A stretch of 33,722 nt of DNA from Macrostomum lignano (taxonomy: Eukaryota). Numbering within the stretch: the first letter of the stretch is position 1; the number at the start of each line of letters is the position of its first letter. Location of the stretch: assembly GCA_002269645.1 (NCBI GenBank), contig NIVC01004838.1, positions 1-33,722 of the forward strand, in the 5' to 3' direction. Below the pieces are notes generated by a model. It was not told where the DNA came from. It worked only from the letters and a program-made list of their open reading frames with translations, and did no database searches. Made by a program: the position numbers and the translations under genes. Shown here in pieces: positions 1 to 21,700 of the stretch.

Positions 1-842
1 CCTCGCTCCCCCACGTTGGTGTTTGCGTCAGGCTGCTTTCGTGCTCCGAACGTGGAATTAACATCGGCGATAAGGAAACGTCAGTGTTGATGAGGTGGTA
101 AGACCTGCATGTACGAGCACAAGAACTGCCACCGATTCTTAGAAAAGAGGCTATAGGGGACATAGCGACATGGTATACACATGTATTGATGACTGACCGA
201 TGTAACTGTACCCCTACGTTAGAGTACATAGAAATGAAGACCTCTCATACCAGAAAAGCATGAGTTTAATATGTGGTTACTACCGGAAATTTTTTATTGG
301 GTGAATCCCTAGCTCTTTAGTAAGACTCTCTAGGACTCAATGCGATTCAGACAAAATCTGCCACGGAGCTAAATGCACTGCTGCAAAATCACATGGACCC
401 AAGCCTACCTACCTGCATTCAAACTTCGCAACTTGTAGCTCGATTTGTATTTTTTTGATTTTTTGTACCTATTCATGTTTGATCAGGAAAAATTTGATGT
501 AATTATAACTTGCCTGTCTAATATTTACATGTTACATATGTAATTTGCATCTGTAATTCCTGCCTCTCTGCCTCAAAAAAGCTTTTTAAGGGATAATTTT
601 TAACAGTACGTGTTTAAATGGAAGCTTGAATTCTGATTTGATTTTGAATTGTGGCCGATTTCTGTTGCCAAGTTCGGAAGTTCTGAGGACTTCGGTATTC
701 GATGTAGGCAGAGCCGTCTGACTCGCCCCGCGACCCCCGGGATCGGTTCAGTACGCGGCCACATGCATATCGGGCCTGTGCACGAAAGTTGGCCCAGGGG
801 GTTGTCCTGCGATTCTCGCCCACATGCGGGCCAAACCCCAAG

Positions 843-985
843 GCGCAGAGGGTGTACATCCCCTGACGATTAGAAAGTCAAAAAGGCCCTGTGTGAGCGT
901 GTGCACGAGTGCGTGCCTGCTTACAGTATTAGCGCGCTTGTGTGTGCTCAGGACTCGGCGGAATGGCCAGAATTGCCTCAGAATT
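843..985 (+). repeat. Unclassified dispersed repeat, copy A
   Basis: Core (g)cacagagagtgcacatgcctgacgattagaaagtcaa...gtgtgagcgtgtg...gtgtgctcagga..cggcggaatg..cagaattg.ctcag, shared with 15487-15611, 16250-16288 and 24628-24745 (reverse). Confidence 0.8.
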
Positions 986-1614
986 GCAGAAGAGCAGTAT
1001 AGTGGATGAAGCCACAACCCTTTGTAATTATTATTAATAATAATCTTGTTATAGGGAGAGCACTTAATCTTTCCTCTCCTAGCTACCATCAATTAACTAG
1101 CTAGGAAGAACTTTATTAATTATACACGGTTTCTGCTCTCGCTGAAATACAGACTGTTTACTCTGCAACTGAAGCAGATTTAGCGCCCAGCCATGGCAAC
1201 TGACGAACGGGCCGCATGGCTCGCTATTCAAATATTTGCCCAAACGTTAATTGCATTAGCAAAACGCCAAGCCTATTTCCATTGCCTGCATTTCGCGCTT
1301 GACTAGTGCGTATCCAATGGCAACGGTGACTAGTTACTTTCGTTTATTCAAGCCCTTCCGCGATTGGCATTAGCCTATGCATGAAAAAATTGATCACGCA
1401 TGTTTCACTACAGATCTATCTAGTCACTGCCCAAGAAGGCCCGGGGATCAATGCCTGTTTCCTAAATTCAGAGCTAAAAAATTCCGAAAATTCAATTCAG
1501 AAGATTATTCAGAAAATAAAACAAAAACCATTGCAAAGAGTATCAATGAATATGGTAGTCAATAGAATGCCAATGCCTTTCATAAGCATTCAAATCTCAG
1601 TTAGTCAAGTTTCA

Positions 1615-2902
1615 TTAAGAGAACTGAAGATACGGCCCCATCAGAAAGACTACAATTATGACGGCGGTAGCAACCACTCCTAACAGCGACAAGAATCTCT
1701 CGATAGCGCGGGTGGCCACCACCCAGTCTGAATCGACCGATTTCTCTTCCGCCGTAGGCGGTTTCCTCACGCAGTTGCCATCGCCCTCAGCTTCAGCCGG
1801 ACTCTGCTGGCCCACCTGTGGCGCCGCTGACGCAGAGCAGTCGGCCCAGGCATCGAACAAAGGCCGCCCGAGCGCATTCCGGCATGCGGCTGCCCTCCGG
1901 CCTGTAGTGGAACAGCATGACCAGCGATGTCAGCAGCAGCGACACGGTGGACAGCACCATGGCGGCCGTGATGAACAGGGCAATGGCGGGCATCTTCTGC
2001 GACTTCGGCAGAATTCCGTCCAGAAGCAGCAAGAACACGGTGTAGCTGAGCATGATTGTGATGCCGAATCCCAGCTTCTCACCGGACTCCAGGGGTACAA
2101 AGTACACCAACACCTGGAGCAAAGTCAACAGCAGCAAAGGCGTGATGATGTTGATGAAATAGTACGTTGACACTCGCTACAAGTGCAATCGCAGAACAAA
2201 GGTCGAAAGTTCGGTCTCATTGTGTCCTTCGATTATAAAATATTTTTTGGTTTCCAAATCTGCTGTAGCATTTTTCAATATCCACTCGTTGCTAGGCTTG
2301 TAGATTCCTGTCACCCGCATTGGCATTGCGCTGCGAACAGGCCGCACTGCATCAGGATTGGCCTGAGTTGCAAGGAAGAACAGCAGCTCGCAAGTGTGCT
2401 GGTCGTACGGAAAGTCGGACATGTTGAATTGACAAAAAAATTCGAACTCCCGGCGCCAGGATGAAGCAACCGTCGTCACGCTTGAATTTTTAGAAGCCAG
2501 TGTAAGTAGGAATCCGAGGAATCAGAATCTGTTCATCGCCGTTACCGTTGTATGTCATGATGATTGGGTACCAAATTTTCGCTGGGTCCCAGCTAGTAGA
2601 ACTGACGCCACCAAAGTCGGCAGGATTCCACACGAGTCGCTCCTCCTCCCAGCTGGCTTAAACGTAGGCAGCGATTTTGATGTTCTGCTTGGCAGTGTCC
2701 ACTGAGACTAATGGGCTGACCATGATGTCAAACGACACGTTGACTTTCTTTGTCTTGTTTAATATTGGCAGAATCATTGGCTGTATGTAGTTGCAATTTT
2801 GTTGTTTAGGTGCTGCATTAGCAGGACATCGAAATCAGTAGCTAGTGTCGAGGCTAAAAGCGAAACCAGCAGTATGAATGAGAATAGCATTTTATGTCTC
2901 AT
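1615..2902 (-). pseudogene. Intronless Cys-loop ligand-gated ion channel (nAChR-like) pseudogene, paralog 1
   Basis: Manual translation gives a signal peptide (MRHKMLFSFILLVSLLASTLA), WEEERLVWNP, WYPIIMTYN, Cys-loop CQFNMSDFPYDQHTC, M1-M2 VYFVPLESGEKLGFGITIMLSYTVFLLLL and M4 DWVVATRAIERF, collinear with the intact paralog at 6286-7590. Lesions: frameshifts near 2795, 2500 and 1800-1830; in-frame stops TAA 2658-2660 and TAG 2177-2179. Confidence 0.92.
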
Positions 2903-3112
2903 TTTCCAGTGCATTGCTGATCGCATTGACAACTGGTACGTCTGATAAAATAGTTTTAACGCCGTTTCACCCCGACCAACTACAGGTTGGGCTCAAAGAT
3001 AGCCTGAAAATCCGTTTGCTACTGAAATTCGATTGGACAGATAGCTTTCATCAATATGAAAGCATAAAGCAGCGCCAGTGTTATCACATTTCTAGCGAGA
3101 TATTTGATAAAT

Positions 3113-3153
3113 ATTGGCTTGAAAAAAATAGACTTGCTTTTTTTCAAGCCAAT
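3113..3153. repeat. Perfect 16-bp-stem hairpin overlapping the outer end of the left inverted repeat
   Basis: attggcttgaaaaaaa (3113-3128) / 9-nt loop tagacttgc / tttttttcaagccaat (3138-3153). Confidence 0.9.
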
Positions 3154-3327
3154 TGAGCCTAGGAGCAAGAAATTTAATCCTTAGTGGGAAGATCAAGCTA
3201 TTGAAGACAATTGCTTTTCATTGTCTAGCAATTTGACGATCATTATTCACATTTTTAATGCAGAACCATCCATTACTACAAGCAATGCATTTTCTTTAGG
3301 ATTGTCAAATAGAAAAACAATGCAAAG

Positions 3328-3422
3328 AATCAGCGGTCGCAGCACGTGGCAACGATTTGTCTATGGCTCGCGCCTACCGGCGCTCGCCAGACAATCGTTG
3401 TCACGCACTGGGACCGCTGATT
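3328..3422. repeat. Imperfect hairpin with about 34-bp arms, inside the extra segment of the left inverted repeat
   Basis: aatcagcggtcgcagcacgtggcaacgatttgtct (3328-3362) versus the reverse complement of 3389-3422, aatcagcggtcccagtgcgtgacaacgattgtct. Confidence 0.88.
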
Positions 3423-3560
3423 ATTTATCCATTGTCTATGGCCCGAAAGGGGGTCCATGGAACAACCAATTTGAGAATTTGGGCGCGCTATTAATCCTTT
3501 CCACAGTTGCGCAAGCCTTAGACCATAGAAAATAACAGATTTCATTAGACAAACATAGAC

Positions 3561-4723
3561 ATGGCAGACGAAGAATTTAGCGAGCAGAGCAGTGACGAAA
3601 GTTTTGCTACAGCCCAAGATGGAGTAGATGAGCAGAATCCTGCAGGGCGAGAACCCTATCGCAAGATAAGCAACGAAAAGTACGACCTGATTGTCGCTGC
3701 CATCGATAGAGGTGATAGTGCTGAGCACATTTCGCGATGGCTGGACGTAAAGAGAAAAACAGTTTATTCTATCAAGCGTCGCTTTGAAACCACGGGACGC
3801 CGGGACCGCACACGACGGGGTGGAGATCGAGCATCGAAACTGGAAGAGAAACACATCCAACTACTTCTTTCATCACTGGATAACAATCCTCTAATGACGT
3901 TGAAAGAGTTGCGACGCAAGTTGACTGACACCTGTCCAGGCCCCGAAGTGAGTACTACTACTGTAAGCCGGACCTTGGACAAGCAGCTGATTACATTGAA
4001 GTGCATTGGTCGAGACGCCGATGTGCCAGTGGTCAGGAATAGTCCTGAATATCGGGCACTCCGACGAGAATTTGCTCACTGGCTCACTGGTGTTCCACCT
4101 GAACGTCACCTCATCTATGCTGATGAGACCGGTTTCAACATTTGGACTCGCCGGTCCCAAGGACGCAGCAGACGTGGCCAGCGAGTCCGACCTGTTTTGC
4201 ACACGCAGCGTGGGGTTCAGGTCAATGTCCTGCAGGCAGTGGCACAAAGTTCGGCTTGGTACACCACAAGATTGTCGGTCACACACTGTCTGCAAACGTG
4301 TTTCAAGCATTTGTCGAGGAGTTACTCCATGCTGTCAACAATCGAGATGATGTAGACAATGCCGACAACTTCTTAGTCATCATTGATGGAGCTCGCTTCC
4401 ATAACGGACTGAGGATCCCCCAGCAGTTTGAGCTGAACTGGCAGGTTGTAGTACTGCCTCCATTTTCTCCATTTCTGAACCCGACCGAGTGTGCGCATTC
4501 CTGTTTGAAGGCGGCCATCAAGCGGCAGCTTGCACAGCCACAGGTGCAAATCGAATTGGACAATCCACCGCCAGAGACAACACTGCTCGAGTGGCGCGTA
4601 CTCGTTCTTCATCGGATTGCGGAGGAGGCAACGGCTGAGACCACAGTAGTCAAATTCGGTGGCTGGTTTTGGCAGATGCTTCGCTTCATCCCGCGCTGCT
4701 TAAACGAGGAAGAAATTCTCTGA
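3561..4723 (+). pseudogene. Transposase (HTH plus DDE), about 387 aa when repaired, with one 1-nt-deletion frameshift near 4245
   Basis: ORF 3561..4355 has HTH-like segments and IYADETGF. It continues in the frame of ORF 4142..4723 (KFGLVHHKIV...VIIDGARFH...LPPFSPFLNPTE). The junction is gtggcacaaagttcggc. Confidence 0.88.
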
Positions 4724-5161
4724 ACATTGATCGGGTTTGGTTTCAATCTGTCCAACACTGTTTTGAGAGACACGATTGTTCTCGGCTTATACTGTATGCC
4801 ATGACTTTTCCTTTGCCTGTTTGATTGGTTTCTCTGAAATCAAAGTGTTAATGTCAATCGTTTCTTGATATGCCATCTATTTGCAGACGCTATTTCAGTA
4901 AAGTTATTCGTGAAGGATATACGAGCACTGTGAAAAGGATTAATTCTCAAATTGGTTGCTCCATAGACCCCATTTTTGGGCCATAGACAATGAAAAGCAA
5001 GTCTTCAATAGCTTGATTCTCCCAATAAGGATTAAACTGCTTGCTCCTAGGCTCAATTGGCTTGGAAACTTCTATACTAAATTTGATTTATCATTTGGCC
5101 GTCAGGCTTTTTACAATATTGCAGCTCCCCTCAAAATGCATGTTTAATCCTCTAAACAGAG

Positions 5162-5504
5162 CATAGACATAAGGATTTTCCAGGATAATACGAGCGTATT
5201 GAATATAACCTAATAAAATCCCGGAATGGAAGTAATGTAAATCGTTATGTATCAGATTAAACATGCCTTTTGAGGGAGTTATTTGTATAAATCACGAGGG
5301 CCTGAGGCCCGAGGGATTTATGAAAATAACTCCCGAAAAAGGCATGTGTAATCTCGTATAAACCATAGACATAAAGACTTTACGGGATATTATTGAATAT
5401 TACCAAATAAAATCCCGGAGAACGCAAATATTGTCACGGAAAGTCTTTATTTCTATGGATTATATCTATGTTTTATATGAAGCTTTAGTTCTATGTCTAT
5501 GGTT
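5162..5504. repeat. MITE-like composite: direct repeats around a 101-bp palindrome, plus 13-bp inverted termini
   Basis: Palindrome 5254-5354 is centred on gggcct-g-aggccc. Degenerate direct repeats catagacata...aataaaatcccgga occur at about 5162-5225 and 5364-5418. aaccatagacata (5361-5373) is inverted at tatgtctatggtt (5492-5504). Confidence 0.7.
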
Positions 5505-6285
5505 ATAAGCTTGTAATTGGACTGAAGTGGTGCTGTTCCCCAGGGTTTTTTGGTTCTGTAGGGTAAAATACAGACTCAGTTTTTTTTTCTTCATCTAAAT
5601 TAGATATTTCTTCAAGATTAAACACACATTAACACAACACACACCATTACCCTCGTATATCCTTTACATAAAGCAATAGGAGTGGAGCTAGTATAATACT
5701 TCCCATTTACAATATTTTGTAATCTAGCGAGCAAGGACTCGAATGTCTTTGTCCCTGGACAACTAAGGTAAAATAATTGACGAATTAGGTGTACCCCCAC
5801 TGTCCCCCTAAGAAGTTAAAACAAAAACAAAATGCGCTGTCAGAGTTCTTAGATGGCAGCGTCACAAGGTCAAAATTAGAAGCGTCACATAAATCTGATA
5901 TATTCGTAAAATATCGAATGTATTATTTCAAAGATTTAGCTACGACAGAAAATTTTATGAAGATAGCGTTGAGAAAAAATTTATATTTAGCGAAAGGATA
6001 ATGTCCAAGAGAGTTAATTTAGATAGAGCATAATTGTGTGCAGCTGAGATTATAAACATTTCTTGGGCGTGACAGCGAGGGTACAAGTTGAAGACCAGTA
6101 AACTCCAATTATCGACTGATTTTCACCTCCTCAAATGTGTGAAAAAATTAAAACGATAATTTTCAAAAATAAGGCTCACTCTGAGTTATCAGTGGGTTAA
6201 ATTTCGAGCAAGATTATTTAAACAAACAGTCTTAAATTCACTGCGCGTTGATAGCTCGTAGATTCCTCTTACGCTCGTAAACAGC

Positions 6286-7590
6286 TTAGTCTTGATTTTG
6301 AATCATGGGTTTCAAAACAAACACTCCGATGATTGCAGCTGTGGCGAAAACTCCCAGAGCCACCATCAGCCTCTCAATCGCGTAGGAAGCCACAATCCAT
6401 TCCGACTTCGCCACGGGAGCTGAGTCGGCCATCTTGCGCACACTGGACTCGCTTGCCGCTGCGTAAGCAGTCGGAGTCTCACTGTCCTGCGCACTGGACG
6501 AGCCGTTCACGCAGAACACGCGTCCAAGGAATCGGACAAAGAAGCCTCGGGCGCATGCGGGCATCTTGGTGCCCTCCGGAGCGTAGTGAAATCGCATGAT
6601 TAGCGAAGTTAACAGCAGTGACACCGTTGACAGGATCATGGCAGACGTGATGAACGATGCAATAGCTGGTGTTGACTGCGACTTCGGCAGGATGCCGTCC
6701 AGAAGCAGCAGGAACACGGTATAACTGAGCATGATTGTGATGCCGAATCCCAGTTTCTCGCCGGATTCGAGTGGTACAAAGTACACCAGCACTTGAAGCA
6801 GAGTCAACAGCAACAGCGGAGTGATTACGCTTATCAAATAGTACGTTGAAACTCTTTTAAACTGCACCCTGATGATATAAGATGGGAGCATTTGCTTCGC
6901 AGCTACTCCGCGAATCAAATTGTAAGCCCTATATTCAGCTTTTGAGGATGCATTCACCAATGTCCACTCGCTGCTCTCTGTGTATAGCGCCTTTATATTG
7001 AATGGGTGATTGGTCTTCGCTATTGGAATTACCATCGAATTTCCGTGCCCCTGGTCGCTGAAGAAGAACTCCAACTCGCAGTCGTGCTGATCCCAAGGGA
7101 ATTTTGACACGTCAAATTGGCAGGCGAATTCGAACTCGCGACGCCACATTGCAGTAACTTGCGTACTGTTCACTGTTGTCGACAAAAGATCTACCGGCAT
7201 CTGCGGCGCGAGAACCTGTCCGTCTCCAATGCCATTATACACCATGATAACAGGAAACCAGACCTCTGACGCGTCCCGGTTAATCACTTTCACGCCGCCA
7301 AACTTTTTCGGATCCCAAACCAGTCGCTCCTCCTCCCACACAGCCTGAATGAATGCTGATATTTTTATGCTCTGCTTTGCCGTGTCCACAGACACAATCT
7401 GAGACAGAAGCGAGTCCATCACGATTTGGATCACCTTGTCCTTGTTAATTCTTGGTAACAGATTCGGGCTGAAATAGCTGATGTTGTTCTTTAAATACGT
7501 GTCAAGTTCACCCTCGAAGTCCTGCTGTCCCTGGACACCAGCCGCTGTCAGCAATAGTGTGACGACAGTCACAAATAGAGCCGGCGTCAT
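6286..7590 (-). CDS. Intact intronless Cys-loop ligand-gated ion channel subunit, nAChR-like non-alpha, predicted cation-selective (434 aa), paralog 2
   Basis: Single ORF with a signal peptide, WEEERLVWDP, WFPVIMVYN, C-x13-C Cys-loop (CQFDVSKFPWDQHDC), four TM helices, GEK before M2, 9' Leu and a short M3-M4 loop. No loop C Cys-Cys. Confidence 0.96.
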   Translation of the reverse strand: MTPALFVTVVTLLLTAAGVQGQQDFEGELDTYLKNNISYFSPNLLPRINKDKVIQIVMDSLLSQIVSVDTAKQSIKISAFIQAVWEEERLVWDPKKFGGVKVINRDASEVWFPVIMVYNGIGDGQVLAPQMPVDLLSTTVNSTQVTAMWRREFEFACQFDVSKFPWDQHDCELEFFFSDQGHGNSMVIPIAKTNHPFNIKALYTESSEWTLVNASSKAEYRAYNLIRGVAAKQMLPSYIIRVQFKRVSTYYLISVITPLLLLTLLQVLVYFVPLESGEKLGFGITIMLSYTVFLLLLDGILPKSQSTPAIASFITSAMILSTVSLLLTSLIMRFHYAPEGTKMPACARGFFVRFLGRVFCVNGSSSAQDSETPTAYAAASESSVRKMADSAPVAKSEWIVASYAIERLMVALGVFATAAIIGVFVLKPMIQNQD

Positions 7591-8826
7591 GTTTATCAGC
7601 TAGCTCTGCTTTGGTATGCCTCGGTTCTCAAGAGAAATTCAATCAACTTTGGTTATAAATATGGAGTTTGTCCAAACAATGGATTTGTTTCATGATTGGC
7701 TTGCTGTGTGGCTTCTGACGCGAGCCACACGCATACAGTATGCATATTTGAGAGGTGCTCCTAACACAACGGTTACCTGAGTGGTGAAAACTGTGCAAGT
7801 TGATTGATTGATCAGATTAGGAGAAGCAAGCAAACGGGCGCACGCAGTATATAGTAGAGCTGCTTTAATTATTAATTCTGCTAAAAATAAAATGAAAGTC
7901 ATGATTGAAAGCTTTCCATATAACGTTCAAACCAATTTAAGTGGCACTTTTAGTGCCTTTCATTTCTATTGTTAATTGCTTTGCTATCGCAACAATGAGT
8001 GGGTACGAATGAAAGTTAGACGGACGAGCCAAGCCAAATAAGCGCATATTAGTAACGAATACCGGATATTCGGTGCCTGGTTTTACTGTGTACTGGAGTG
8101 TTAGTGCCTGCGGTTAATTTACTCATTGAATTTACTGATGCTATTTGTTTAATGAGTGGAATTAATGTGGATTAGCAATTAGACAATAACTGCATAATAA
8201 ATTAAATAGTTTGCAATTTTTTGTAATACTGCTTTTAATATTTTGTCGAAGTTTCTACAAAACAAGTTTCTATGAATCTTCACTCGCTCTCACTTCTAGT
8301 TTGAAAAGTAGACTTTTACGAGTGGTTCTGAAAAAATAAAAAACCTTCGCTCCATCAAAAATATATTTAACTAAATAAACTAATTATATTAATTATACAT
8401 ATATAATTAATAATAATACACTTCTCTGAAACTCTCCTTTCTCACTTGCTCTGGCACCGAAATGTCTGGCAACGAAGTTTCTGGCTACATAACAACCAAA
8501 CTTTTCTTAGTTCACTCACTGAAGTTTCTCGTTTCATAAAAAGTTCGAAACTACTCTAAGTAGCTAAAAACGGATGGAAAAGTTTTGCTAACGACGCATT
8601 TTTTGGTGAAGTTATCGTTAAATTTAAGATTATCCAGCGACAAGAAGTACATGTGGACAGAAAATGTATAGCTGGTAGTAGTAGTGTTTGATTAGACGAA
8701 AATATTTATTTATTTAAACATTTAAAATATTGATGCGTGATGCGCGTTTTCTCGCGCTTATTCTTCCAAAAATAAAGGAAGATTTTAGCCTCAGTGAAAC
8801 TGTTAGCTGCCAATTGTGAAGCCAAG

Positions 8827-10129
8827 TCAGCACTTGTGCGGCGAACCCCAGTAGGGCCTGATGATGAGCCCGCCCAGGAAGGCGGCTGTGGCTGCAACGC
8901 CCAGCGCTACCATCAGCCGCTCGACAGACTTTGTTGCCACTGTCCAATCCGATTGAATCCGGCCGGCGTCTCCATCCACTTTTCTAACGTTGGTCCGGCT
9001 ATTGTCGCTATTTTCCGTCCGAACCGTGGCATTGCTACCTTTCACGCACAGCAGACGGTCTAGAAACCGGACGAGAACGACTCTAAGGCAGGTTGGCATT
9101 CCATCATCTCCAGGCGTGAAGTGAAGTCGCATGGTCAAAGAAGTCAGTAGGAGAGATCCTGTGGACAGAATCATCGCAGACGTGATGAAATATGCAACAA
9201 ATGGCAGCTTTTGTGACCGATAGAATGCCGTCCAGGAGCAGTAGGAACACAGTGTAGCTGAGCATGATTGTGATGCCGAATCCCAGCTTCTCACCGGACT
9301 CCAGTGGCACAAAGTACACCAGCACTTGAAGAACAGACAACAGAATGAGCGGTGCAATGATGTTCACGAAGTAATAATTTGATACTCGACAGATCTGAAG
9401 CCTTAATTCGTACGTTGGAAGCTGCGCCTTTCTCAGACCTTGAATCAGAGCGTACTCCTTGAACTCTTCAGACGTGGAGAAGTTCAGAAGTGTCCATTCG
9501 CTGCTCTTTTGGTAGAGAACTAGCGGGTTATACGGAAACAGCTTGTTGACCTCAGGTTCTACCCCAGAATTGTGCCGTTCAGGATCGATGAAGCAGAATG
9601 ATATAGAGCAGTCGTGCATGTCCACGGGAAACTGGCTTACGTCAAACTTGCAAGTGAATTCGAACACGCGACGCCATGGAGCCGTGACTTGGGTTAAGTT
9701 GGGTGATTGCGACGTTAGGAAAACTGGCGTTTTTGATTGCGGCACCTGATCCTGTCCTACACCGTTGTACATCAAAATCAAAGGGCTCCAGATTTCATCA
9801 ACTTTCCAATTAATAACGGTAACATCACCGAATTTGCTCGAATTCCAAACCAGCCGCTCCTCTTCCCATTTTGCCTGAAGCAATGCGCTCACTCGTATCG
9901 TCTGCTTCACCGTGTCAACCGCAGTTATGTGGGTCAGCAGAGGGTCCATCCTGACAGCAATTTTAGCATTCGGCTCTATCCTGGGCGGGAGCAGGGGACT
10001 GTAGTTGGTTATGTTGTTCTTCAAGTACTGTATCACGTTAGCCTGGTGGTCCGCCCAGACAAAGCTGTTGCAGAAGAAACAGACAGCAAGAACAGTGAGA
10101 ACAGCTGACAAATTTCGTAGTGGAGCCAT
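8827..10129 (-). pseudogene. Intronless Cys-loop channel paralog 3 with one 2-nt deletion after M2 (pseudogene or assembly error)
   Basis: ATG at 10129 (MAPLRNLSAVLTVLAV...), WSPLILMYN, Cys-loop CKFDVSQFPVDMHDC, PLESGEKLGFGITIMLSY. Relative to paralog 1 (ctg ccg aag tcg cag aag) it reads cta tcg --g tca caa aag, a deletion between 9217 and 9218. M3 and M4 continue in ORF 8827..9357. Confidence 0.9.
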
Positions 10130-10632
10130 GGCGCTAAGCTTTCTCTGCACGGATCAAAACAGTTCAGAGCTCCGCACACGCTTATCTACAGTTATATCCA
10201 AAATGAAATTATATCTTCGCTTATTTCCAGTGTTTGCGATCGATAGACTGCATATACAATTGCTAATGAAATGTTTGCCCATCAGCAGTCTCCATCAACT
10301 GCATCTGAGCCTTCCGACTCACAGTTAGAAAGCGCGATTGTCGTGTCAGTCTGTTTAAACTGCAATTTATTTCTCCGGCATTATCCTGCGCAAACAGTTG
10401 GCCATTAGCGTTGCCAAGCTGACAATTATCAGGTTCGCGACTTGGTTAAGTCAAACAGACGAACATGCAGGCGAGAACTCAGAATAAATTAAATAATTGA
10501 TAACAGCTACGTGGGTAGAATTGCTTTACTACAGTTTCACGTACATGTAACACTTCATTGCATTTAAGTAACTTCAACTGCGAGTAAACATGTTCAAAAT
10601 TTTATGTCAATTGACTGTAACAAAAGCTAGTA

Positions 10633-12004
10633 CTGGCGCCCCTGGTGCTGGCGCCCCTGGTGCTGGCGCCCCTGGTGCTGGCGCCCCTGGTGCTGGCGCC
10701 CCTGGTGCTGGCGCCCCTGGTGCTGGCGCCCCTGGTTCTGGCGCCCCTGGTGCTGGCGCCCCTGGTGCTGGCGCCCCTGGTGCTGGCGCCCCTGGTGCTG
10801 GCGCCCCTGGTGCTGGCGCCCCTGGTGCTGGCGCCCCTGGTGCTGGCGCCCCTGGTGCTGGCGCCCCTGGTGCTGGCGCCCCTGGTGCTGGCGCCCCTGG
10901 TGCTGGCGCCCCTGGTGCTGGCGCCCCTGGTGCTGGCGCCCCTGGTGCTGGCGCCCCTGGTGCTGGCGCCCCTGGTGCTGGCGCCCCTGGTGCTGGCGCC
11001 CCTGGTGCTGGCGCCCCTGGTGCTGGCGCCCCTGGTGCTGGCGCCCCTGGTGCTGGCGCCCCTGGTGCTGGCGCCCCTGGTGCTGGCGCCCCTGGTGCTG
11101 GCGCCCCTGGTGCTGGCGCCCCTGGTGCTGGCGCCCCTGGTGCTGGCGCCCCTGGTGCTGGCGCCCCTGGTGCTGGCGCCCCTGGTGCTGGCGCCCCTGG
11201 TGCTGGCGCCCCTGGTGCTGGCGCCCCTGGTGCTGGCGCCCCTGGTGCTGGCGCCCCTGGTGCTGGCGCCCCTGGTGCTGGCGCCCCTGGTGCTGGCGCC
11301 CCTGGTGCTGGCGCCCCTGGTGCTGGCGCCCCTGGTGCTGGCGCCCCTGGTGCTGGCGCCCCTGGTGCTGGCGCCCCTGGTGCTGGCGCCCCTGGTGCTG
11401 GCGCCCCTGGTGCTGGCGCCCCTGGTGCTGGCGCCCCTGGTGCTGGCGCCCCTGGTGCTGGCGCCCCTGGTGCTGGCGCCCCTGGTGCTGGCGCCCCTGG
11501 TGCTGGCGCCCCTGGTGCTGGCGCCCCTGGTGCTGGCGCCCCTGGTGCTGGCGCCCCTGGTGCTGGCGCCCCTGGTGCTGGCGCCCCTGGTGCTGGCGCC
11601 CCTGGTGCTGGCGCCCCTGGTGCTGGCGCCCCTGGTGCTGGCGCCCCTGGTGCTGGCGCCCCTGGTGCTAAAGCCCCTGGTGCTAAAGCCCCTGGTGCTA
11701 GCGCCCCTGGTGCTAAAGCCCCTGGTGCTAAAGCCCCTGGTGCTAAAGCCCCTGGTGCTGGCGCCCCTGGTGCTAAAGCCCCTGGTGCTGGCGCCCGTGG
11801 TGCTAAAGCCCCTGGTGCTGGCGCCCGTGGTGCTAAAGCCCCTGGTGCTAAAGCCCCTGGTGCTGGCGCCCCTGGTGCTAAAGCCCCTGGTGCTGGCGCC
11901 CGTGGTGCTAAAGCCCCTGGTGCTAAAGCCCCTGGTGCTAAAGCCCCTGGTGCTGGCGCCCGTGGTGCTAAAGCCCCTGGTGCTAAAGCCCCTGGGGCTG
12001 GCGC
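10633..12004. repeat. 15-bp GC-rich minisatellite (ggcgcccctggtgct)n, about 91 units
   Basis: Near-perfect array to about 11668, with one ttct variant near 10737. Variant units aaagcccctggtgct, agcgcccc... and ggcgcccgtggtgct cluster in the last ~335 bp. Confidence 0.99.
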
Positions 12005-12697
12005 AAAATACAATATTATATCAATTATGTATCTTTGAGACTTAAATCGCAAAATGAAATTTTTATTTAAAAAACATGAACGGTGTATCTTTTACTTAAA
12101 AACAGGCCTGCCATTTTTCCAGGAAATATGGTTTTTGGCGCAATTTAGCGGTTCTTGCTTTGTACAACAGCCGTGGGATTTTATTGCTCATTAGATGAAG
12201 AAGTGATGGCGGCTGTCAACCGATGAAACGTTTCGCCTCTGACTCTTCTTCTCATTCCACCCCTCCCTATTAGGCTTACTTTTCTCTAGGTAGCTACCTT
12301 CCTCTTTACTATTTAGCTACTTCAGTTGTTAGCCTTAGAGAGAAGAACTCTTACCCATGTCTGCCAATGGACTTAAATTGTCTTTGAGGCAATTTTTACA
12401 CAGTTGCACAGTATTGTAGAACACAAACACCCTTCTGGCAGCCCAGAGTATTCCCGCGGTAGCTTCTTCTATTCAAGAACTGATGCTTGAGTTAACTTGG
12501 AATCGACTCTTTTAGCATTAGAAAAAATACGCTTTTGCAGCTGTCATTTTTCAACATCCTGCTGTTAAAATAGAAAAAAGCGATGCGTTCCATCCTTAAG
12601 ACTTAGCCAGGTTCTTAACTATAAAACCCGACGCTTATTAGAGAACCAACGCGCAACATCTTAACTGAGAATTACAAATTTCACACTGAAGACACCA

Positions 12698-12785
12698 ATG
12701 CTGAGACTCCTTATTAGAATAATCATCACCTGCTGCAGCTCTGCAGGGGCAGCAGTTTGGGCCGCAGATGCTGAAGTGCAGATTG
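12698..12785 (+). CDS. Mosaic gene exon 1: signal peptide
   Basis: [29 protein letters not shown], then donor g|gtaaga (phase 1). Confidence 0.75.
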
Positions 12786-15700
12786 GTAAGAGCCGTGGAC
12801 AACTATTTTAGTTGGCCATGCTTTTATTTCGTCATATGTAGATAAGAAACGATTTTTTGCTCCGCTGGTTGCGAAACAATGTCCCCAAAATTCGTTCCCT
12901 GCATCGGCAGGTGCCCCCCAGCTCGACCAGCTCAGCCGGTCTCCGATGGGCCTCGGCCGCTACTTCCCCGTCTCCTGGGTCGTCCTCGGCAGCAGCGACA
13001 CTGATCAGGGCCTGATGTCGCTCAGCTTCCGAGCCGAGCCAGGCGGACCCACAGCTCAGGGTGCCCACCTGAACGGCGATAAATGGGTCCGGATCTACTT
13101 TCCTCTGAACTTCACGGTCACTGGCTTTCTGGTGTTTGGCAACAGCACCAGAGTGGAGAACCCGGGCCGGGTGACCCGTTTCTACGCTGGCCACTCGCCC
13201 AGGAAATCGCTGATGACCTCTTCGCCCGTGTACTCGGCTGACACCTTCAATAACAAGGTGACTCAGGCAGATTGCTCAAACCCAAAAAGCCTAATTCTAA
13301 GTGTCGGGACATGCAACTCACCTGTTACTACAGGACCCTTAAACGATTAATGAGCTGAAAATGGGACCTCTTAAGTTTAGGGCTCTAGACTACATGGAAT
13401 TAAAATTCACAGAGAGTTTTCTTGCTTGTCTTTTATCGGTATCAGAAAACAGTCTGAGGTTGGCATGCAGTCTTAGCCTAACATCCAATCCTCTGTATTT
13501 TGACCATTGTTGGTTTGTAAGTGCCTTAGCACTTTCATGGTGTCTGCTAACACTATTGCAACTATAGTTTAGTTGATAGTGTTAGCGGTGATATAGGCGT
13601 TTTTAAGATGCCTCGGCGGTTCTAAAATATTTCGAGGGTTCTAGCATGTCTCGAGGATGTCTCAGCGGTTCTAGAATGTCTGAAGCGGATATCCCCTTAC
13701 GAGCACATTAAAATCGACTCTGTAAAGCCTATTAGGCAGATTAAGCGAGTAGAATGCTTTCAGGCTTTGTAAAATTCTCCTGGGATGATTTCACTCGAAA
13801 TCCACCTCCGAGAAAGCCACCTCGAAAGTTGGCGTTAGCTTGTTTAATGCGTCAATCATTATCGATCATTCAGAATACTTAAGTACTTCGTAACTCTTTA
13901 TAGAATAATTTTTTTTAAATGAAACCATAAACGCAAGCTTGCAAATAAAGAACTGCCGTTTGAGATGACAGCCTGGATGACAAACAGCATTGAAGAGCAC
14001 TTCTGGAGCAATTCGACGTTAATACAACAATTACAAAGATGTTTTTCAATGAATTGGAGTAGTGGGGAAAAGCATGTGCTTCAGTTAAGTTATATGAGTG
14101 ATGGATGGCTGGATTATCAAATTGATGGATAGTTTTACCAATACATTATTAGCGTTTAACAAGCTTCCCAAACAAATAAAGTTTTGTTTACCAGTTGCTA
14201 AGGAAAATATTTTACGCTCTTCTAATCCGGACAGAGACTGCGGAATATGGGCTAAAGGGGAAGCCTGCCCCATCCCTTCTAATGAAGGTTAAAGTGGTCA
14301 AAGACCCCAAGCAAGAATAAAACCCCTCATGTAACGCTTAAATCTCACCTGAGTTGCGATTAATTTATCCATGAGTTCGTATTTACTGACTAGGAACTTG
14401 GACTTTTGACCCTTAGTCAAAATGACAATTATTTAGGAGTCTGTCCTATAGCAAATTAATGTTATTAGAACTCATAATACATACTTTTATATTACTATAC
14501 TAGGACTAAAGCGTTAGAAACAATAATTGATATATTTCTTGACATCGCATCCCTCAGATCCTGTACTACGTATCGTGCCCAGATGCCAAGAATTATCCGT
14601 GTCTCGTGCCGCTCAATGGCCCGATTGAAACTCAATTGGTTTATTTTGAGCCAAGAGGCTGGTCAAGTCGGTGCCTTCTTCAGCTTGACGTGGCCGGCTA
14701 TCCTAGTCCAAACGGTACGTCTGAATTTCTATTCTATTCTATTCCATTCTATTCTATTCTATTCCATTTTATTCTATTCTATTCTATTCTATTCTATTCT
14801 ATTCTATTCTATTCTATTCCATTCTATTCTATTCTATTCTATTATATTCTATTCTATTCTATTCTATTCTATTCTATTCTATTCTATTCTATTCTATTCT
14901 ATTCTATTCTATTCTATTCTATTCTATTCTATTCTATTCTATTCTATTCTATTCTATTCTATTCTATTCTATTCTATTCTATTCTATTCTATTCTATTCT
15001 ATTCTATTCTATTCTATTCTATTCTATTCTATTCTATTCTATTCTATTCTATTCTATTCTATTCTATTCTATTCTATTCTATTCTATTATATTCTATTCT
15101 ATTCTATTCTATTCTATTCTATTCTATTCTATTCTATTCTATTCTATTCTATTCTATTCTATTCTATTCTATTATATTCTATTCTATTATATTCTATTCT
15201 ATTCTATTCTATTATATTCTTTTCTAATATTCATTGCCTTTTTCCACTGAAGACATGCCTTTGACATACAGTACAAATGCAGCTTGAATTTTAAAATTAC
15301 ACAGAATTTAGCATCCCATTGTGAATGACTACTATTATGAGCGTAGTAGCATGCTAAGATTACATAAGTAGAGGGCTTAGTGGTAAACCTGCCTGATTTT
15401 TGCTCTACGACTCCTGGTTCGATTCCACGAAAAATTGGTCCAGGCGTTGTCGTGTGATTCACTTTCCATTAGGGCCAGCCCTTAAGGCACAGAGAGTGCA
15501 CATGCCTGACGATTAGAAATTAAAAGGGCCGTGCTGTACACCCCGTGTGAGCGTGTGTATGACGCACTTGCGTGTGCTCAGAAGTCGGCGGAATGAGCAG
15601 AATTGTCTCAGCGCCGGCTGTGGGACGCTGTCGCCGAGAGGGCGTTGCGCCAGAGGTGCCGGCAGCAGCCCTCCTGCAAATATTTAGTTACTTCAAGAGT

Positions 15701-18700
15701 AAAACTATTGCTTGAATAATTTCAAATCGTGCATATTCATTTTATTATTCATGAAAAACTTCGATATTGTTCCATAAAGTGAATAACGTGCACTGTCCCT
15801 CAGCTTGTCCGCTGATCGACAGCTCGGACTACTCGATAACAGCGCCCCTGAGTAGCGGCTCGGAGATTCTGGTGCAGCTGAACTTTACTCGACTCCACTA
15901 TGTAACCGCTTTCACAATGGGCAGCCTGCCAGCAAACAGCAGATTTTGGCTGTCCTACCAGCTGGTTGCTGGCGAAGACTTTGTTAATCTGACGCACGCC
16001 TGGAATGACAGCTTATGGACGGTGAGCTGAAGTTTATGGAAGCTGTCAACTTTTAAAAGCTTTCATAGCCGGCAAAGTAATACTCGTAACGCCATGCGCA
16101 AAAGGAGGGGCATAAGTTGGAGTTCTGTTCAATCAGGGTCTACGACAGTTATCTGCCGCAATTTGACAGCAGACCCTATCCATAACCTAAAGACCTAACC
16201 TAAACCCTACCTAACCCTAATCGTCGGAAGTCCGAAGGCCGACCACCAAGACACAGAGATTTTACATGCCTGACGGTTAGAAAGTCAATACACAACTGTA
16301 CATCTAGAATCTGCGCGCTTTTCTGTTAGCAGAATACGCTCGCAGGCAGAATCGACTTAGTTGTGAGACCGTGTGCCATGCTGTGGTGGCCCAAATCTCT
16401 TGCAGACATTAATTTTATATTATAAACAAGGCATTTTTCAAAAATCATAGAGGTCTACTAAAAATGATAAACATATTTATGGATCTTCTTCGGACTAAAA
16501 TTGATTCAATTACAAGACTCCGGGCATACGACAATCGTTTAGTTGAATCCCTCCTGTCCAGTTCCCAGTCACCTACACTAACGAGACCTTCATTATGCCG
16601 TTTTTCCTGACGCCGCTGAGTATAAAGTTTCACTTCGTCGATGCATCAGAAGAAATAACCGTTGACTCCGTGAAAGGCTGCAAAGTTAATGGTTAGTTCT
16701 GTTTTTTATGTTTTCTTCCAGCTAAAGATTCTGATGTTACTGTTCGTGGTTACTTGAAAAGTCATACTCATTTTGCTAGTCTGTCCTGACGGCTGGATCG
16801 CATCGATGCACAGCTGCTGGTACCCGGTGGAAAACCGAGTCACCTGGACCGCTGCCAACCAGTTCTGCTCCGAGCACACCTGGGGCGGCGTCAGGGGCCG
16901 CCTGTTGGACGCCAAGACTGCCGTGGAACGCAGCTTCATCACACCACCGTAATTTAAATAGTTTAATACCTTCTGCTTACTACTTCAGTATGCTTACAAC
17001 ACTCCGTGGGTGCTGTAACCCGAATCTACATGTACTTAAAGCTATAATGGACCAGAGGGTCAACGAAGCAAAACCTCGAAAGCTTGGTTCAGTAGCAGTC
17101 TAGTTATTCTGGTATGTACTAGATTTTTAGAAGGATGTTTTAGAAAGTTCAATATTAATACTAATAACTGATTACACCTGCCTTAATGGGCAGATGTGCA
17201 ACCGACAGCTCAGCCGCAGCTATTGCGCGGCAAATCTGAAGACTACATACTGCATACAAGGACTGGGGGGTCGCCACACACACCCTCAATTACCCCAGCT
17301 AATGCTGGCACCCATTTTACAGCTGGGTGGACTGAAGCAATGCAGAGTTAAGTGTCTTGCTCAAGGACACAAATTGTTCCAGTGGGATTCGGGAATCGAA
17401 CCACCGACCTTCAAGTAGTGAGTCCGACGCTCTAACCACGAGGCTACATCCCCTTTTCAGGAAGTCCAAGGAAAAGTCTATAATCGAATTGAGAGTTAAA
17501 GTAGCAATCAATATGGATTTGAGTATTAATAGATATGATGGATGATATCTGTGGTTCCCCAATCCTCTTGGACAAAGGGACTAAGTTATTTTTCGATAGA
17601 AGTGCCAAAATCTTGTGTTTGTGTCGCCATTAAGAGAAAGAAAAAATAGCAAGGGTACACCGGAAAGTTATTTGCTTTAAAGTAAGTGATTCCGTTCTTC
17701 CTTATTTTTCTTTTGAACCAAGTCGCTCTATTTTGAAACTACATGTAAAAGTAGAAATCGTAAAAATTATGACAGGTACTCAGGGAGTGAGAGAAGTTAC
17801 TTCAGTTATTTTCACACGGGTCTCAAGCGTAACGCCAGCAACAGCCAGTGGGTCTGGGGTGACGGCACCCAGCCTGAGGTTGGCGCCTTCTACATGGGCC
17901 GGCCCGCGCCCAACTGTGCCGCGCTGGACACTTTCACCGGAACCATGGTGGACGTCACCTGCGGCCTGCAGCTGAAATTCATCTGCCAGATCGACAAGTA
18001 CACACGTAAGTGCTCAAACTGATGGCATTTATTAATAATTTTGTTATTATTTTTTAATGTTTTTCTTTGCACATTTCAGCATCGAAAAGCGAGTGGCACA
18101 CCGTCCAACTGAGCTCTGGGGACAGCTGCAGCGTTGGGTTGGATGATGATATCAGCGATGTAGGCGGGCTGTTTCAGGCCATTCGTCTGCTGAATTTAGA
18201 TAGCCAAAGTAGTAAAATAGCTGCGTGTGCTTCCACTTGCACCTTTATTACAAGTTTACCGAGTGACTGCCATTCCGGGAGGTCGAATTACGTCACATAC
18301 CACCCACTGCAAGTGAAGCAAGGTGAGAGCTTATGTGCAACAATTTCATTAATTTGGTTATTGAGCTATTGCAATAGTGGCGCGAACTACTCGTAAATAG
18401 ATTTTTCATTTTCTCAACGTATGATACAGAAACATGTATCTTGCATTGAAACATAGATGGACTAAATAAACAAGTTCATGGACATCATTAATAGTGTATA
18501 TTATACTTTTATTTTTTGCGTTCAATGACAAAATTATTAATAAAATCAAAGTTGAAGTTAATTGGAATTTCGACTTTGCCATCGTCGCCATTTAGACTGT
18601 CTACAGCCTCTGCTGAACGGCATCACTGGCAAGCTTGATGTGGAAGTGTCGGCCTCCAGCAGCAACTACCGACGAAGTCCTGATGGTGCTTTGATTGGTG

Positions 18701-21700
18701 CGGCTCTGAAATATGAAGGTAGCTAATCTATATCTTTATGCGAAAAATTCATTGACTTTAGCTCCGACTTATTTCTAAGCCAATATGAATAACTGAACTG
18801 TACAGATCACTTAAAGTGCACGGTAGTTGGAGGAGATTCAAATTTCTACGACTATGGGATTACGATGACCGACTATGGACGAGCATGCGTGCCTTGGAAC
18901 GGACGGTACTCAAGATTCAATAGATCCTGCATCACTGGTGAGACTGGCCGGAGAGCTGACTTGCTTTGGCTTAATTTGGTTTAATTTTAGCAGTAAAGTG
19001 AGTCACCAAATATTGTGTCCTAATCTCATTATTCTACTTTCAGTTTCAACTGGAGGTTTAACAACGTGCCAAGTTACTAATTCAGGTGACACTCAAACCT
19101 GCCATAAGTCCAGGGACGACTTTTTGTGCTGTAAGATGACGTCATTCTAAGAGTTTTTTTAGCAATAAAATTGTCATTTATTACAGAAATTATTTCGCTT
19201 TTTAGCTCATTTTTACTACCCGCCATCGGGATCAAGTGCCGCAACGCAAGTGTTTTCCGTTACTTATCAAAAAACATTTTACTTCAACGATGTAATTATA
19301 TCCAATCCTAGCGAAAATATGGAGTACGTTTATTTGCACACTAACGGTATATCTTCTGCAACGCCAAGGCACTATTGGCGACTTCTCGTTGATTTAAAAT
19401 CCAGCCACTGCATTGGATACATTTACGCGGACCTTTCACTAAGTGAGTTTTCCATGGTTATGTTTTTTTTAGGGAATAATATGTTAGCCAGCCATGGTGG
19501 CGCCAAAATAAGGGAGTCAAGCCTATTGAGGGTCGCGGGTCACTTCTCTCCACCCCCCTCCTGGCAACGCCATTGGCGTCACTCTTCGAAAATATATTCA
19601 GAAAATTTTTGTTTTGTTTTTTTGTGTACATACATGTAGTTCACATCAAGAGAATTTATTCGAGTTTCCTATATATATATATATATAGGATTTGTCCTAT
19701 GTAGTCTATATAGTCCTATATATATATAAGGACGCAAAGATTATGGTAGGCGTCTTGCGCGCACGTACTCGCAGAAGAGACAAGAAGGACAGTTTGTGAC
19801 AGATTGCGGGGTCAGTTTAATGGCTTGTAGGTCAGACTCTAGCGTGGCGGTCAGCGTGGCGGTCCGGCCTTGGCCCCGTCGGAGACGCTCGGTTGGCTGA
19901 TGCAGCAGGGTGAGCGCCAGCGGGTTTTGCTCCCCTCTGCCGCAGCTGCGGAGGCAGTGGCCGACGAGCATTAGCCGGGGCTGGAGGGTGGCACTGAGCT
20001 GAGGCACGCGGGCTCTCGCCATCAGCAGGTCCGTTGGCAGGCGCTCTGGGTAATGTATGCTAACGGCGAACCGCAGCAGCGATTAGTAGGCAGCGTCCAG
20101 GGCTCGAGACCTCGAGTCGGTCATTGGCACTGCCTCCAGTCCGTACAGGAAGATTGGCTCTACGGCAGCGCGGAACAGGCGCATCTTCAGGTTGAGCTGA
20201 AGGTCGTTGGCAGTTGAGCTGAAGACCTCCCTGAGGAGATGAGCCGCGCGCCAGGCGCGTGACCTCCGGTCAGCGATGATGGAGTCAGGGCTCATCACGA
20301 AGGAGCCCAGGTACCGGAAGTCTCTGCAGACTGAAATGACTTGCCCATCTGGAAGGGTCAGGATTGGTGCTGCATCGGTGCCCACGTGCTGCACCTCCGT
20401 CTTGCGTGCGTTGATTTGCAGTCCGACTCGGCCGCTCTCCTCATAGAGTCTCGAGAGCGCTCTCTGGGCGGCAGTCGGACTGCGGTACAGCAGGGCGATG
20501 TCGTCGGCGTACGCGAGGGCGGGCAAATGGGCAGCACCGCGGCGGGAGCTCTGGCGTGACACCAGCAGGTAACTGTCCTCCTCTGTGAGGCTTCGGCGCA
20601 GCACGTAGTCGACGACAAGGATGAAGAGCAGTGGGGCCAACATGTCACCTTGGAGGACTCCGGTGCTGGTGCAAAAGGCTTTGCTGTTGTTGTAGAGGTC
20701 CATCACTGCAGAGATAAGAGCCGGGTGGACGCCATAGTGCTCGAGCAGCCACGCGATCGCGCGCCGGCACACTGAGTCAAAAGCTTTGCGGAAGTCCACA
20801 AAGACAATTGACACAGCTGTTTGGTGAGTTTTACAGGCCTCGACGACTGCTCGAAGGGCTGCAATCTGCTCTGTTGTCAAGCGGCCGGGCCTGAAGCCAC
20901 TTTGGAGGCTCAGGAGCCATTTGCCATTTGGTTGAGGCCAGGCAGCAGCCGATTACGCAGTATAGCATTGAGCAGCTTGGCCAGAGTGCATTCCAGATCG
21001 ATGCGAGCGTGTTTCCTAGTTTAATATAAAATGTATTAATATAAATGAAATCTGAAAGAAGTTTATCGCTAGCTACTAGGTACATGGTTACATCGGTTTT
21101 GAAGTCGATCGATCCATTAACAGATATTTTAGTCAATGTGTAGCTAAATATAGGCTATATGTTTTACTGAAATTGCTTTCCTTTCCGCTATGTAGAAGTC
21201 TCCCTTATCTAAAAAGATAGGCTTTTGTCATTAGAATATAGATTAAATTTATCAGCTTTAATAAAAACTTCAATCTTCAGCGACCAACAATTTCTCTGTA
21301 AAAGTTGGAAACAATTGGAACTCCAGTCTGAAAGACCTGGCGTTTGAATCCTGGCCTGAGTGCTACAGATTCAACCTACCTATGAGTGCGCCCTCGTCAC
21401 TGCAGATGCGATGCCTTAGCCGTCTCTGCGGTCGATATATTGTCTTTTTGCAGGGCGTTTCAACGGGAAAAATGGGTATCCGAAACTTGAAAATTCAAGC
21501 TGAAGAAGGTGAGCAAAATCACAATAATTTTACTGTAATATAAATTTTGGTTCAGTATCGTATGCAAAACACATTCGAATAGAACGAATTGTTCATTTTT
21601 GTCTACATTTCATCGTTTATTCATTCACCATGCGTACTGCCTGGTCAAGGTGATTTCAAATAACAAATACCGTGTAGAATCATTGACGGCCAGGCTAGGG

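Follow-up and report, generated by a model that had tools for sequence, protein, structure and literature searches.

The window analysed here, by which we mean the whole stretch of 33,722 nucleotides (nt) taken from contig NIVC01004838.1 of the flatworm Macrostomum lignano (assembly GCA_002269645.1), carries between positions 1615 and 10129 what appears to be a Macrostomum-specific tandem array of intronless, highly divergent Cys-loop subunit genes of the nicotinic acetylcholine receptor (nAChR) type. Using the 434-amino-acid product of the central gene as a query in tblastn, we found exactly three Cys-loop homologs across the window, all of them on the minus strand and arranged head to tail, and Pfam assigned the domains Neur_chan_LBD and Neur_chan_memb to the array genes. 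An earlier description made from the letters alone, called here the sequence-only reading, had announced three such head-to-tail genes, and on this point it was right. The three copies are referred to below as g1, g2 and g3:

1615 to 2932, minus strand: g1, pseudogene of a paralogous nAChR-like subunit, with a likely ATG at 2890, as seen in the alignment to an intact ortholog of 440 amino acids at a second locus
6286 to 7590, minus strand: g2, nAChR-like Cys-loop subunit gene, intact and intronless, a single open reading frame (ORF) of 434 amino acids
8827 to 10129 (also given to 10150), minus strand: g3, third paralog, otherwise collinear with an intact ortholog of 441 amino acids at the second locus

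The sequence-only reading had also considered all three as intronless genes. None of them has introns, but only the gene at 6286-7590 is uninterrupted, g1 bearing five lesions and g3 a 2-nt deletion.

The intact gene g2 encodes, in this order, a signal peptide, an extracellular domain, the transmembrane helices M1 to M3, a short M3-M4 loop and the helix M4. Its ligand-binding and transmembrane domains were detected by Pfam with E = 1.5e-25 and 3.1e-21, both exceeding the gathering scores. The protein displays 95-96% amino acid identity with M. lignano PAA92206.1 (BOX15_Mlig033226g1), which is annotated as 'hypothetical protein', and 98% identity with the fragment A0A1I8GG98. In the AlphaFold2 (AF2) model of g2, for which the predicted local distance difference test score (pLDDT) is 75 and the predicted template modelling score (pTM) 0.64, we observe a beta-sandwich and the helices M1, M2, M3, MX and M4. 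Downstream of g2 we found neither a clear AATAAA signal nor a remnant of poly(A), and it is solely from the absence of introns that we infer a putative origin of the array genes by retroposition.

The same array is found in M. lignano on the scaffold carrying the PAA92206.1 gene (GCA_002269645.1 NIVC01000059.1, positions 185128-206432; hereafter L001). Positions 1-16950 of the window are collinear with this locus at roughly 78-93% nucleotide identity, non-coding DNA included. The three copies, on one strand, span 8.5 kilobases (kb) in the window versus 6.2 kb in L001. There, the orthologs of g1, g2 and g3 are each an intact single ORF that runs from the signal peptide through the end of M4:

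L001 7863 to 9188: ortholog of g3, intact ORF of 441 amino acids
L001 10001 to 11305: ortholog of g2, intact ORF of 434 amino acids
L001 12783 to 14105: ortholog of g1, intact ORF of 440 amino acids
L001 16369 to 16671, plus strand: C-terminal fragment (M3-M4 region) of a fourth copy, with about 44-54% identity to the receptor family

The latter fragment lies in synteny just past the left end of the window and is evidence for an additional, degraded member of the array. The coding sequence is a single exon for g2 in the window and for the three genes in L001. Compared with their L001 orthologs, the coding sequences of the window show a nucleotide identity of 97.2% for g2, with zero indels, 95.8% for g3 and 95.0% for g1. 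One array gene is present in GenBank, as the 'hypothetical protein' mentioned above, and the L001 orthologs of g1 and g3 are seemingly unannotated. M. lignano has been described as a neopolyploid, with three subgenomes reported and extended paralogous regions (PMC10733133). For this reason, the window is most simply taken as a paralogous (subgenome) copy of the L001 locus, or as the corresponding locus of a very close relative. Since two of its genes are disrupted while all three are intact in L001, the window, about 90% identical to that scaffold in its DNA, has the appearance of a decaying duplicate. At the L001 locus the array adjoins a gene for a GIPC1-like PDZ protein (L001 19062-21305, plus strand); this gene is called over a range exceeding its coding length, and introns are therefore present in adjacent genes, unlike in the single-exon receptor genes.

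Judging from its alignment, g1 is unambiguously a pseudogene. In tblastn and in the ORF list it is broken up into several short ORFs and spreads across three reading frames, and we counted five disabling lesions, namely three frameshifts and two in-frame stops:

2776/2777: 1-nt deletion
2658-2660: in-frame stop TAA
2515: 1-nt insertion
2177-2179: in-frame stop TAG
1820/1821: 8-nt deletion

The two stops are point mutations in the nucleotide alignment to the L001 ORFs, and g1 additionally carries an in-frame insertion of 3 nt. For its part, g3 is split over two overlapping ORFs. Its lesion is a deletion of 2 nt at 9217/9218, in codon 312, that shifts the frame directly after M2 and is located outside any homopolymer. 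It is thus a probable pseudogene, barring an assembly error. Introns were considered as a source of the frame changes of g1 and g3 and ruled out, the alignment to the L001 ORFs being gapless except for indels of 1-8 nt. A public g1-type protein of 255 residues, P0003 (UniParc UPI0007A18BAA), shows 93% identity to L001 g1 across residues 1-217, after which it goes out of frame. It matches exactly neither the window nor L001 and seems to point to a third genomic copy of g1, likewise disrupted or mis-assembled. We also noted an ORF of 170 amino acids antisense to the g1 pseudogene (window 1658-2170, plus strand). This ORF, which has no independent support, most likely arises only because the opposite, coding strand is GC-rich.

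Motif columns were read from an alignment of five family sequences with the 99 nearest nAChR-like homologs and four 5-HT3A sequences, the family being also aligned with human alpha7. Residue series are given in the order g1, g2, g3 and P0002, the last one being a fourth intact paralog found among public proteins. In g2, the motifs involved in binding of acetylcholine (ACh) and in ion conduction are located as follows:

7249 to 7260, minus strand: loop A, W111-F-P-V114, where the canonical motif is WxPD (Asp replaced by Val), from the alignment to human alpha7 and the family alignment
7078 to 7122, minus strand: Cys-loop, C157 to C171, with 13 residues between the two Cys and FPxD kept (CQFDVSKFPWDQHDC)
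7054 to 7068, minus strand: loop B, FFFSD, with S178 at the position of the Trp engaged in the cation-pi contact with ACh (alpha7 W149)
6877 to 6936, minus strand: loop C, 4-5 residues longer than in alpha7, with Leu-Ile for the vicinal Cys and Leu at the position of Tyr195
6694 to 6765, minus strand: M2 pore helix, SGEKLGFGITIMLSYTVFLLLLDG, in which the -1' Glu is E278 and the 9' Leu is L288

In loop A, where the canonical sequence is WxPD, the three window copies read WYPI, WFPV and WSPL; W-x-P and Tyr93 are retained, and Asp is replaced by I, V, L and E. Loop B reads FFLAT, FFFSD and FCFID in g1, g2 and g3, the cation-pi Trp (W149) being replaced by A, S, I and N and the preceding Gly by F, F, C and F. 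Loop C exceeds that of alpha7 by 4-5 residues in all members, and the vicinal Cys pair has given way to I/L plus I/F. Among the aromatic residues of this loop, Tyr195 is replaced by L or I and the position of Tyr188 is kept (Y or F). On the complementary face, the Trp of loop D (W55/W57), which is present in 70 of the 99 nearest homologs, is replaced by Y, I (F in the window copy), L and F. For comparison, 18 of these homologs are devoid of the loop B Trp and 21 of the loop A Asp.

The cation pore, by contrast, is conserved. SGEK, with its -1' Glu, and the 9' Leu are present in every family member, and the protein sequence of M2 is identical in the three window paralogs. The Cys-loop, with 13 residues between the two Cys, is also invariant across the family, and the M3-M4 loop comprises about 60 amino acids. 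What the sequence-only reading had said of the altered loop A, of loop B without Trp and of loop C without vicinal Cys agrees with the alignments to alpha7 and to the homologs, and the same is true of the short M3-M4 loop, the intact GEK motif and the 9' Leu. The vicinal Cys and the complete aromatic box of an alpha-type ACh-binding subunit are found in no family member, nor is the loop D Trp of a complementary face. Altogether, the hallmark residues for ACh contact are replaced on both faces, mostly by aliphatic side chains, next to a conserved cation pore, in line with the absence of ACh-binding residues proposed earlier. The encoded proteins nevertheless retain all that a pentameric cation channel needs, that is a signal peptide, a beta-sandwich, the Cys-loop, M1-M4, GEK and the 9' Leu, and the GEK ring together with the 9' Leu suggests that the family channels would be selective for cations.

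Concerning the origin of the family, the best sequence matches of g2 in the PDB are nAChR alpha3/alpha7, with E about 1e-40, followed by other nAChR subunits and then by Alpo4 (8BX5, 1.1e-25) and 5-HT3A (about 1e-24). With the AF2 model of g2, the best 50 Foldseek matches are all nAChR chains, with a target-normalised TM-score of 0.7-0.84, and alpha4beta2, alpha7 and alpha3beta4 are at the top. The family is thus nearer to nAChRs than to 5-HT3 receptors, and the nAChR-type origin put forward from the letters alone is supported by both comparisons. An exhaustive phmmer search of 1.84 billion representative proteins returned as close relatives only P0002 (52%), P0013 (a fragment of g2) and P0003 (45%). 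All close relatives that have a name or match L001 are from M. lignano, and the remaining matches show about 34% identity or less. A family-profile search yielded no further members; its sole matches were P0001, P0002 and a single rotifer alpha7 (27% identity). The L001 orthologs of g1 and g3 and the paralog P0002 gave the same Pfam result as g2, with ligand-binding plus transmembrane domains.

Neighbour joining with 5-HT3A as the outgroup recovered the family as monophyletic in 100 of 100 bootstraps. The stem measures 0.64 substitutions per site, and the nearest neighbours of the family are spread over different phyla: an unc-29-like protein of Aplysia, an alpha7/alpha10-like protein of amphioxus, and sequences from Nematostella, Lingula, Ridgeia, a chiton and a mite. 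Neither phmmer nor the profile search nor the tree revealed a one-to-one ortholog outside Macrostomum, and the expectation that the family would nest in no clade of one-to-one nAChR orthologs is consistent with this topology. Protein databases and L001 together contain four paralog types and one fragment. The g1 and g3 orthologs are missing from the public proteome annotation and protein databases therefore undercount the family. As for the lineage-specific expansion that had been proposed, its monophyly and its restriction to Macrostomum are supported, but the visible expansion is modest and two of the three window genes are pseudogenes. A literature search on the gene identifier and on nAChR or ligand-gated channels of Macrostomum retrieved no description of the family.

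We also analyzed how selection has acted on these genes. Between the window and L001, the ratio of nonsynonymous to synonymous substitutions (dN/dS) is 0.30 for g1, 0.25 for g2 and 0.28 for g3, with dS of 0.07-0.11, and it is 0.20-0.34 for the extracellular domain. When the three paralogs are compared with one another, the proportion of synonymous differences (pS) reaches 0.52-0.80, and the duplications that gave rise to them are old, because synonymous sites are saturated or nearly so. From preM1 to M3, the paralogs still share 80-88% protein identity with a pS of 0.52-0.57 and a dN/dS of 0.07-0.16. Such identity at near-saturated synonymous sites indicates that they are real, constrained genes, and the pore is under strong purifying selection. 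On the other hand, the extracellular domains of the paralogs are only 37-50% identical and the M3-M4 loops 36-41%. Gene conversion was considered as the cause of the identical M2 helices and was ruled out, given the pS of 0.52-0.57 from preM1 to M3 and a nucleotide identity of about 78%.

Besides the array, the window contains several mobile and repeated elements. One of them is inserted within the array itself:

3141 to 5068, plus strand: Tc1/mariner-type DNA transposon between g1 and g2, recognized from Pfam HTH_32/DDE_3 and inverted repeats

It has long structured terminal inverted repeats, made of 68-nt outer arms and inner repeats, and its transposase is split by a frameshift into two ORFs (3561-4355 and 4142-4723). 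As it is absent from the syntenic position of L001, it was inserted after the duplication. Further on, at 10633-12004, lies a 15-nt minisatellite (CTGGCGCCCCTGGTG; 91.5 copies, 95% matches, about 75% GC) that in several frames gives rise to long, artefactual ORFs (GAPGA, LAPLV). In L001, the syntenic interval measures only about 140 nt, and the minisatellite has therefore been expanded in the window or collapsed in the reference assembly. A (TTCTA)n microsatellite of about 100 copies, giving spurious 'SILFY' ORFs, is conserved in position (window 14727-15226, L001 4468-5241). An isolated reverse-transcriptase ORF fragment (RVT_1; 20083-20880, minus strand), located in a GC-rich (60%) kilobase, is probably a truncated non-LTR (long terminal repeat) retrotransposon. 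The gag-pol region of an LTR retrotransposon occupies 28613-32086 on the minus strand, with zinc-knuckle and aspartyl protease in the ORF 30917-32086 and the tail of the reverse transcriptase, RNase H and integrase in the ORF 28613-30637; its frame is broken between 30637 and 30917, inside the reverse-transcriptase region. Finally, an ORF of 191 amino acids (26121-26696, plus strand) had no Pfam match, and no tRNA genes were found in the window.

How can these features be interpreted? The most likely explanation, to which we would give a probability of roughly 55%, is that the family consists of orphan subunits of cation channels whose gating would not depend on ACh at a canonical site. According to this proposal, the intact proteins would assemble as cation channels, either homomeric or with one another, their orthosteric site would no longer accommodate ACh in the canonical manner, and the channel would be opened by some other ligand or cue. 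Several observations weigh against it. Loss of the loop B Trp and of the Cys-Cys pair is also typical of ordinary non-alpha subunits in ACh-gated heteromers. In addition, 12 of the 99 nearest homologs are without both W149 and D89, and 47 without Cys-Cys. The residues are indeed replaced in the family, as the sequence-only reading had said, but such losses are not rare; they are unusual but not unique among the nearest nAChR-like homologs. The aliphatic replacements might also fill the pocket instead of reshaping it for a new ligand. Moreover, the clade cannot be placed precisely, its attachment point being unreliable in a neighbour-joining tree with a long branch, and the frameshift of g3 could in principle be an assembly error, though it is not in a homopolymer.

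The most serious competitor of the orphan-channel explanation, though a clearly less probable one, is that the proteins would be non-alpha structural subunits. These would co-assemble with canonical alpha-type flatworm nAChRs into ACh-gated heteropentamers, contributing to the pore and to modulation without binding the agonist. The beta, gamma, delta and epsilon subunits of vertebrate muscle receptors, which are without the loop B Trp and Cys-Cys, provide a precedent. An accessory role would fit with the nearest homologs lacking W149 (18/99), D89 (21/99) or Cys-Cys (47/99), with the extreme, nAChR-like conservation of M1-M3 and with purifying selection over the whole protein. However, the Trp of loop D, normally kept by complementary subunits for ACh binding, has been lost too (Y, I/F, L, F), and the family is not a single conserved accessory ortholog but an old clade of its own, with at least four members and diversified extracellular domains. 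With the loop D Trp gone and several diversified paralogs present, an accessory role becomes less probable.

Another hypothesis, that of the sequence-only reading, is drawn by analogy with cephalopods. Here the family would be analogous to their chemotactile receptors but evolved independently, and it would be expressed in sensory cells and respond to environmental, possibly hydrophobic ligands. We regard this as rather unlikely. The two families do have a set of traits in common, since both are nAChR-derived, intronless and clustered, and have lost the ACh residues while keeping the cation pore (PMC11526382, PMC10338036). The pocket replacements, mainly aliphatic and hydrophobic, differ between paralogs, and the extracellular domain diverges next to a fixed pore. 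Yet the same set of traits is encountered in many nAChR-like genes of molluscs and annelids with unknown or non-sensory function (PMC6896357; Alpo4, PMC10338036). Furthermore, the family is small, with four paralog types and one fragment visible, the dN/dS of 0.20-0.34 for the extracellular domain between the duplicated loci reflects constraint and not diversifying selection, and duplicates are decaying in the window and apparently also in the third copy, P0003. It is in the same way improbable that an nAChR retrogene lineage of Macrostomum independently turned into a small non-cholinergic chemosensory family of cation channels, which would represent a second, convergent origin outside molluscs. 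Lastly, a dying family in which every copy would be non-functional, as two disrupted window copies of three, the frameshifted public protein P0003 and the copy reduced to a C-terminal fragment (L001 16369-16671) might suggest, is very improbable in view of the three intact ORFs of 434-441 amino acids at L001, of the dN/dS, which is 0.25-0.30 when the loci are compared and 0.07-0.16 for the pore region of the saturated paralogs, and of the fourth intact paralog P0002.

Turning back to the orphan cation-channel subunits that we favor, parallels can be drawn with several known systems. In vertebrate alpha7, alpha3 and alpha4, we find the same Cys-loop, SGEK intermediate ring, 9' Leu, loop A Trp, Pro and Tyr93, and topology as in the family. 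Identity with these vertebrate neuronal nAChRs is however about 22-25%, and D89, W149, C190-C191, Y195 and W55 are all replaced in Macrostomum. The Macrostomum loop C is 4-5 residues longer, the gene is intronless, and the M3-M4 loop has about 60 amino acids versus well over 100.

Other counterparts exist among lophotrochozoans, to which Macrostomum belongs. In molluscs, tandem nAChR genes that lack introns, diverge strongly in sequence and are in part degenerate have been well described, and expansions also in annelids (PMC6896357); the sequence-only reading had mentioned intronless nAChR expansions of other lophotrochozoans. Among the species of that survey, which did not cover flatworms, intronless nAChR genes were found only in molluscs. 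Like the array described here, the mollusc and annelid expansions (Jiao et al. 2019, PMC6896357) are intronless, lineage-specific and partly degenerate, and they form head-to-tail arrays of 2-12 genes. They differ in scale, bivalves possessing 99-217 nAChR genes and Macrostomum at least four paralog types of its family, and no ortholog of the Macrostomum family was seen among them in the neighbour-joining tree.

The cephalopod chemotactile receptors (CRT1, CRB1) are likewise nAChR-derived and intronless, with loss of the ACh-binding residues, and function as non-selective cation channels (PMC11526382). The best 60 sequence matches in the PDB and the best 50 fold matches of our family include no chain of a chemotactile receptor. 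As judged from these lists and from the non-cephalopod neighbours in the tree, which did not include chemotactile receptor sequences, the Macrostomum family forms a separate clade. In addition, Octopus has up to 26 chemotactile receptors, with a binding pocket under diversifying selection and with demonstrated ligands and expression in sensory cells. The comparison with Alpo4 from the annelid Alvinella pompejana (PDB 8BX5; PMC10338036) is instructive as well. This orphan receptor sits on an isolated branch, is without vicinal Cys, does not respond to ACh or serotonin, and matches g2 at E = 1.1e-25 in the PDB search. However, it keeps the aromatic box, including the Trp of loop B (W159), as well as the Trp of loop D (W65) (PMC10338036), whereas the Macrostomum proteins have lost both. 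Two aspects of the present family are new. Its host belongs to the Platyhelminthes, a phylum outside the survey cited above, and its ACh site has been stripped on both faces, even of the loop B Trp still found in Alpo4.

The finding stands at the level of annotation. The intact locus and its decaying duplicate illustrate gene loss following the recent genome duplication of Macrostomum. Lophotrochozoans have many orphan nAChR-like subunits, and for almost none of these is a ligand known. In this respect, a clade this compact, with about four members, in a flatworm that can be made transgenic, is tractable for asking what orphan nAChR-like receptors sense, because of its small size and its host, of the loss of both faces of the ACh site and of the strong conservation of the cation pore.

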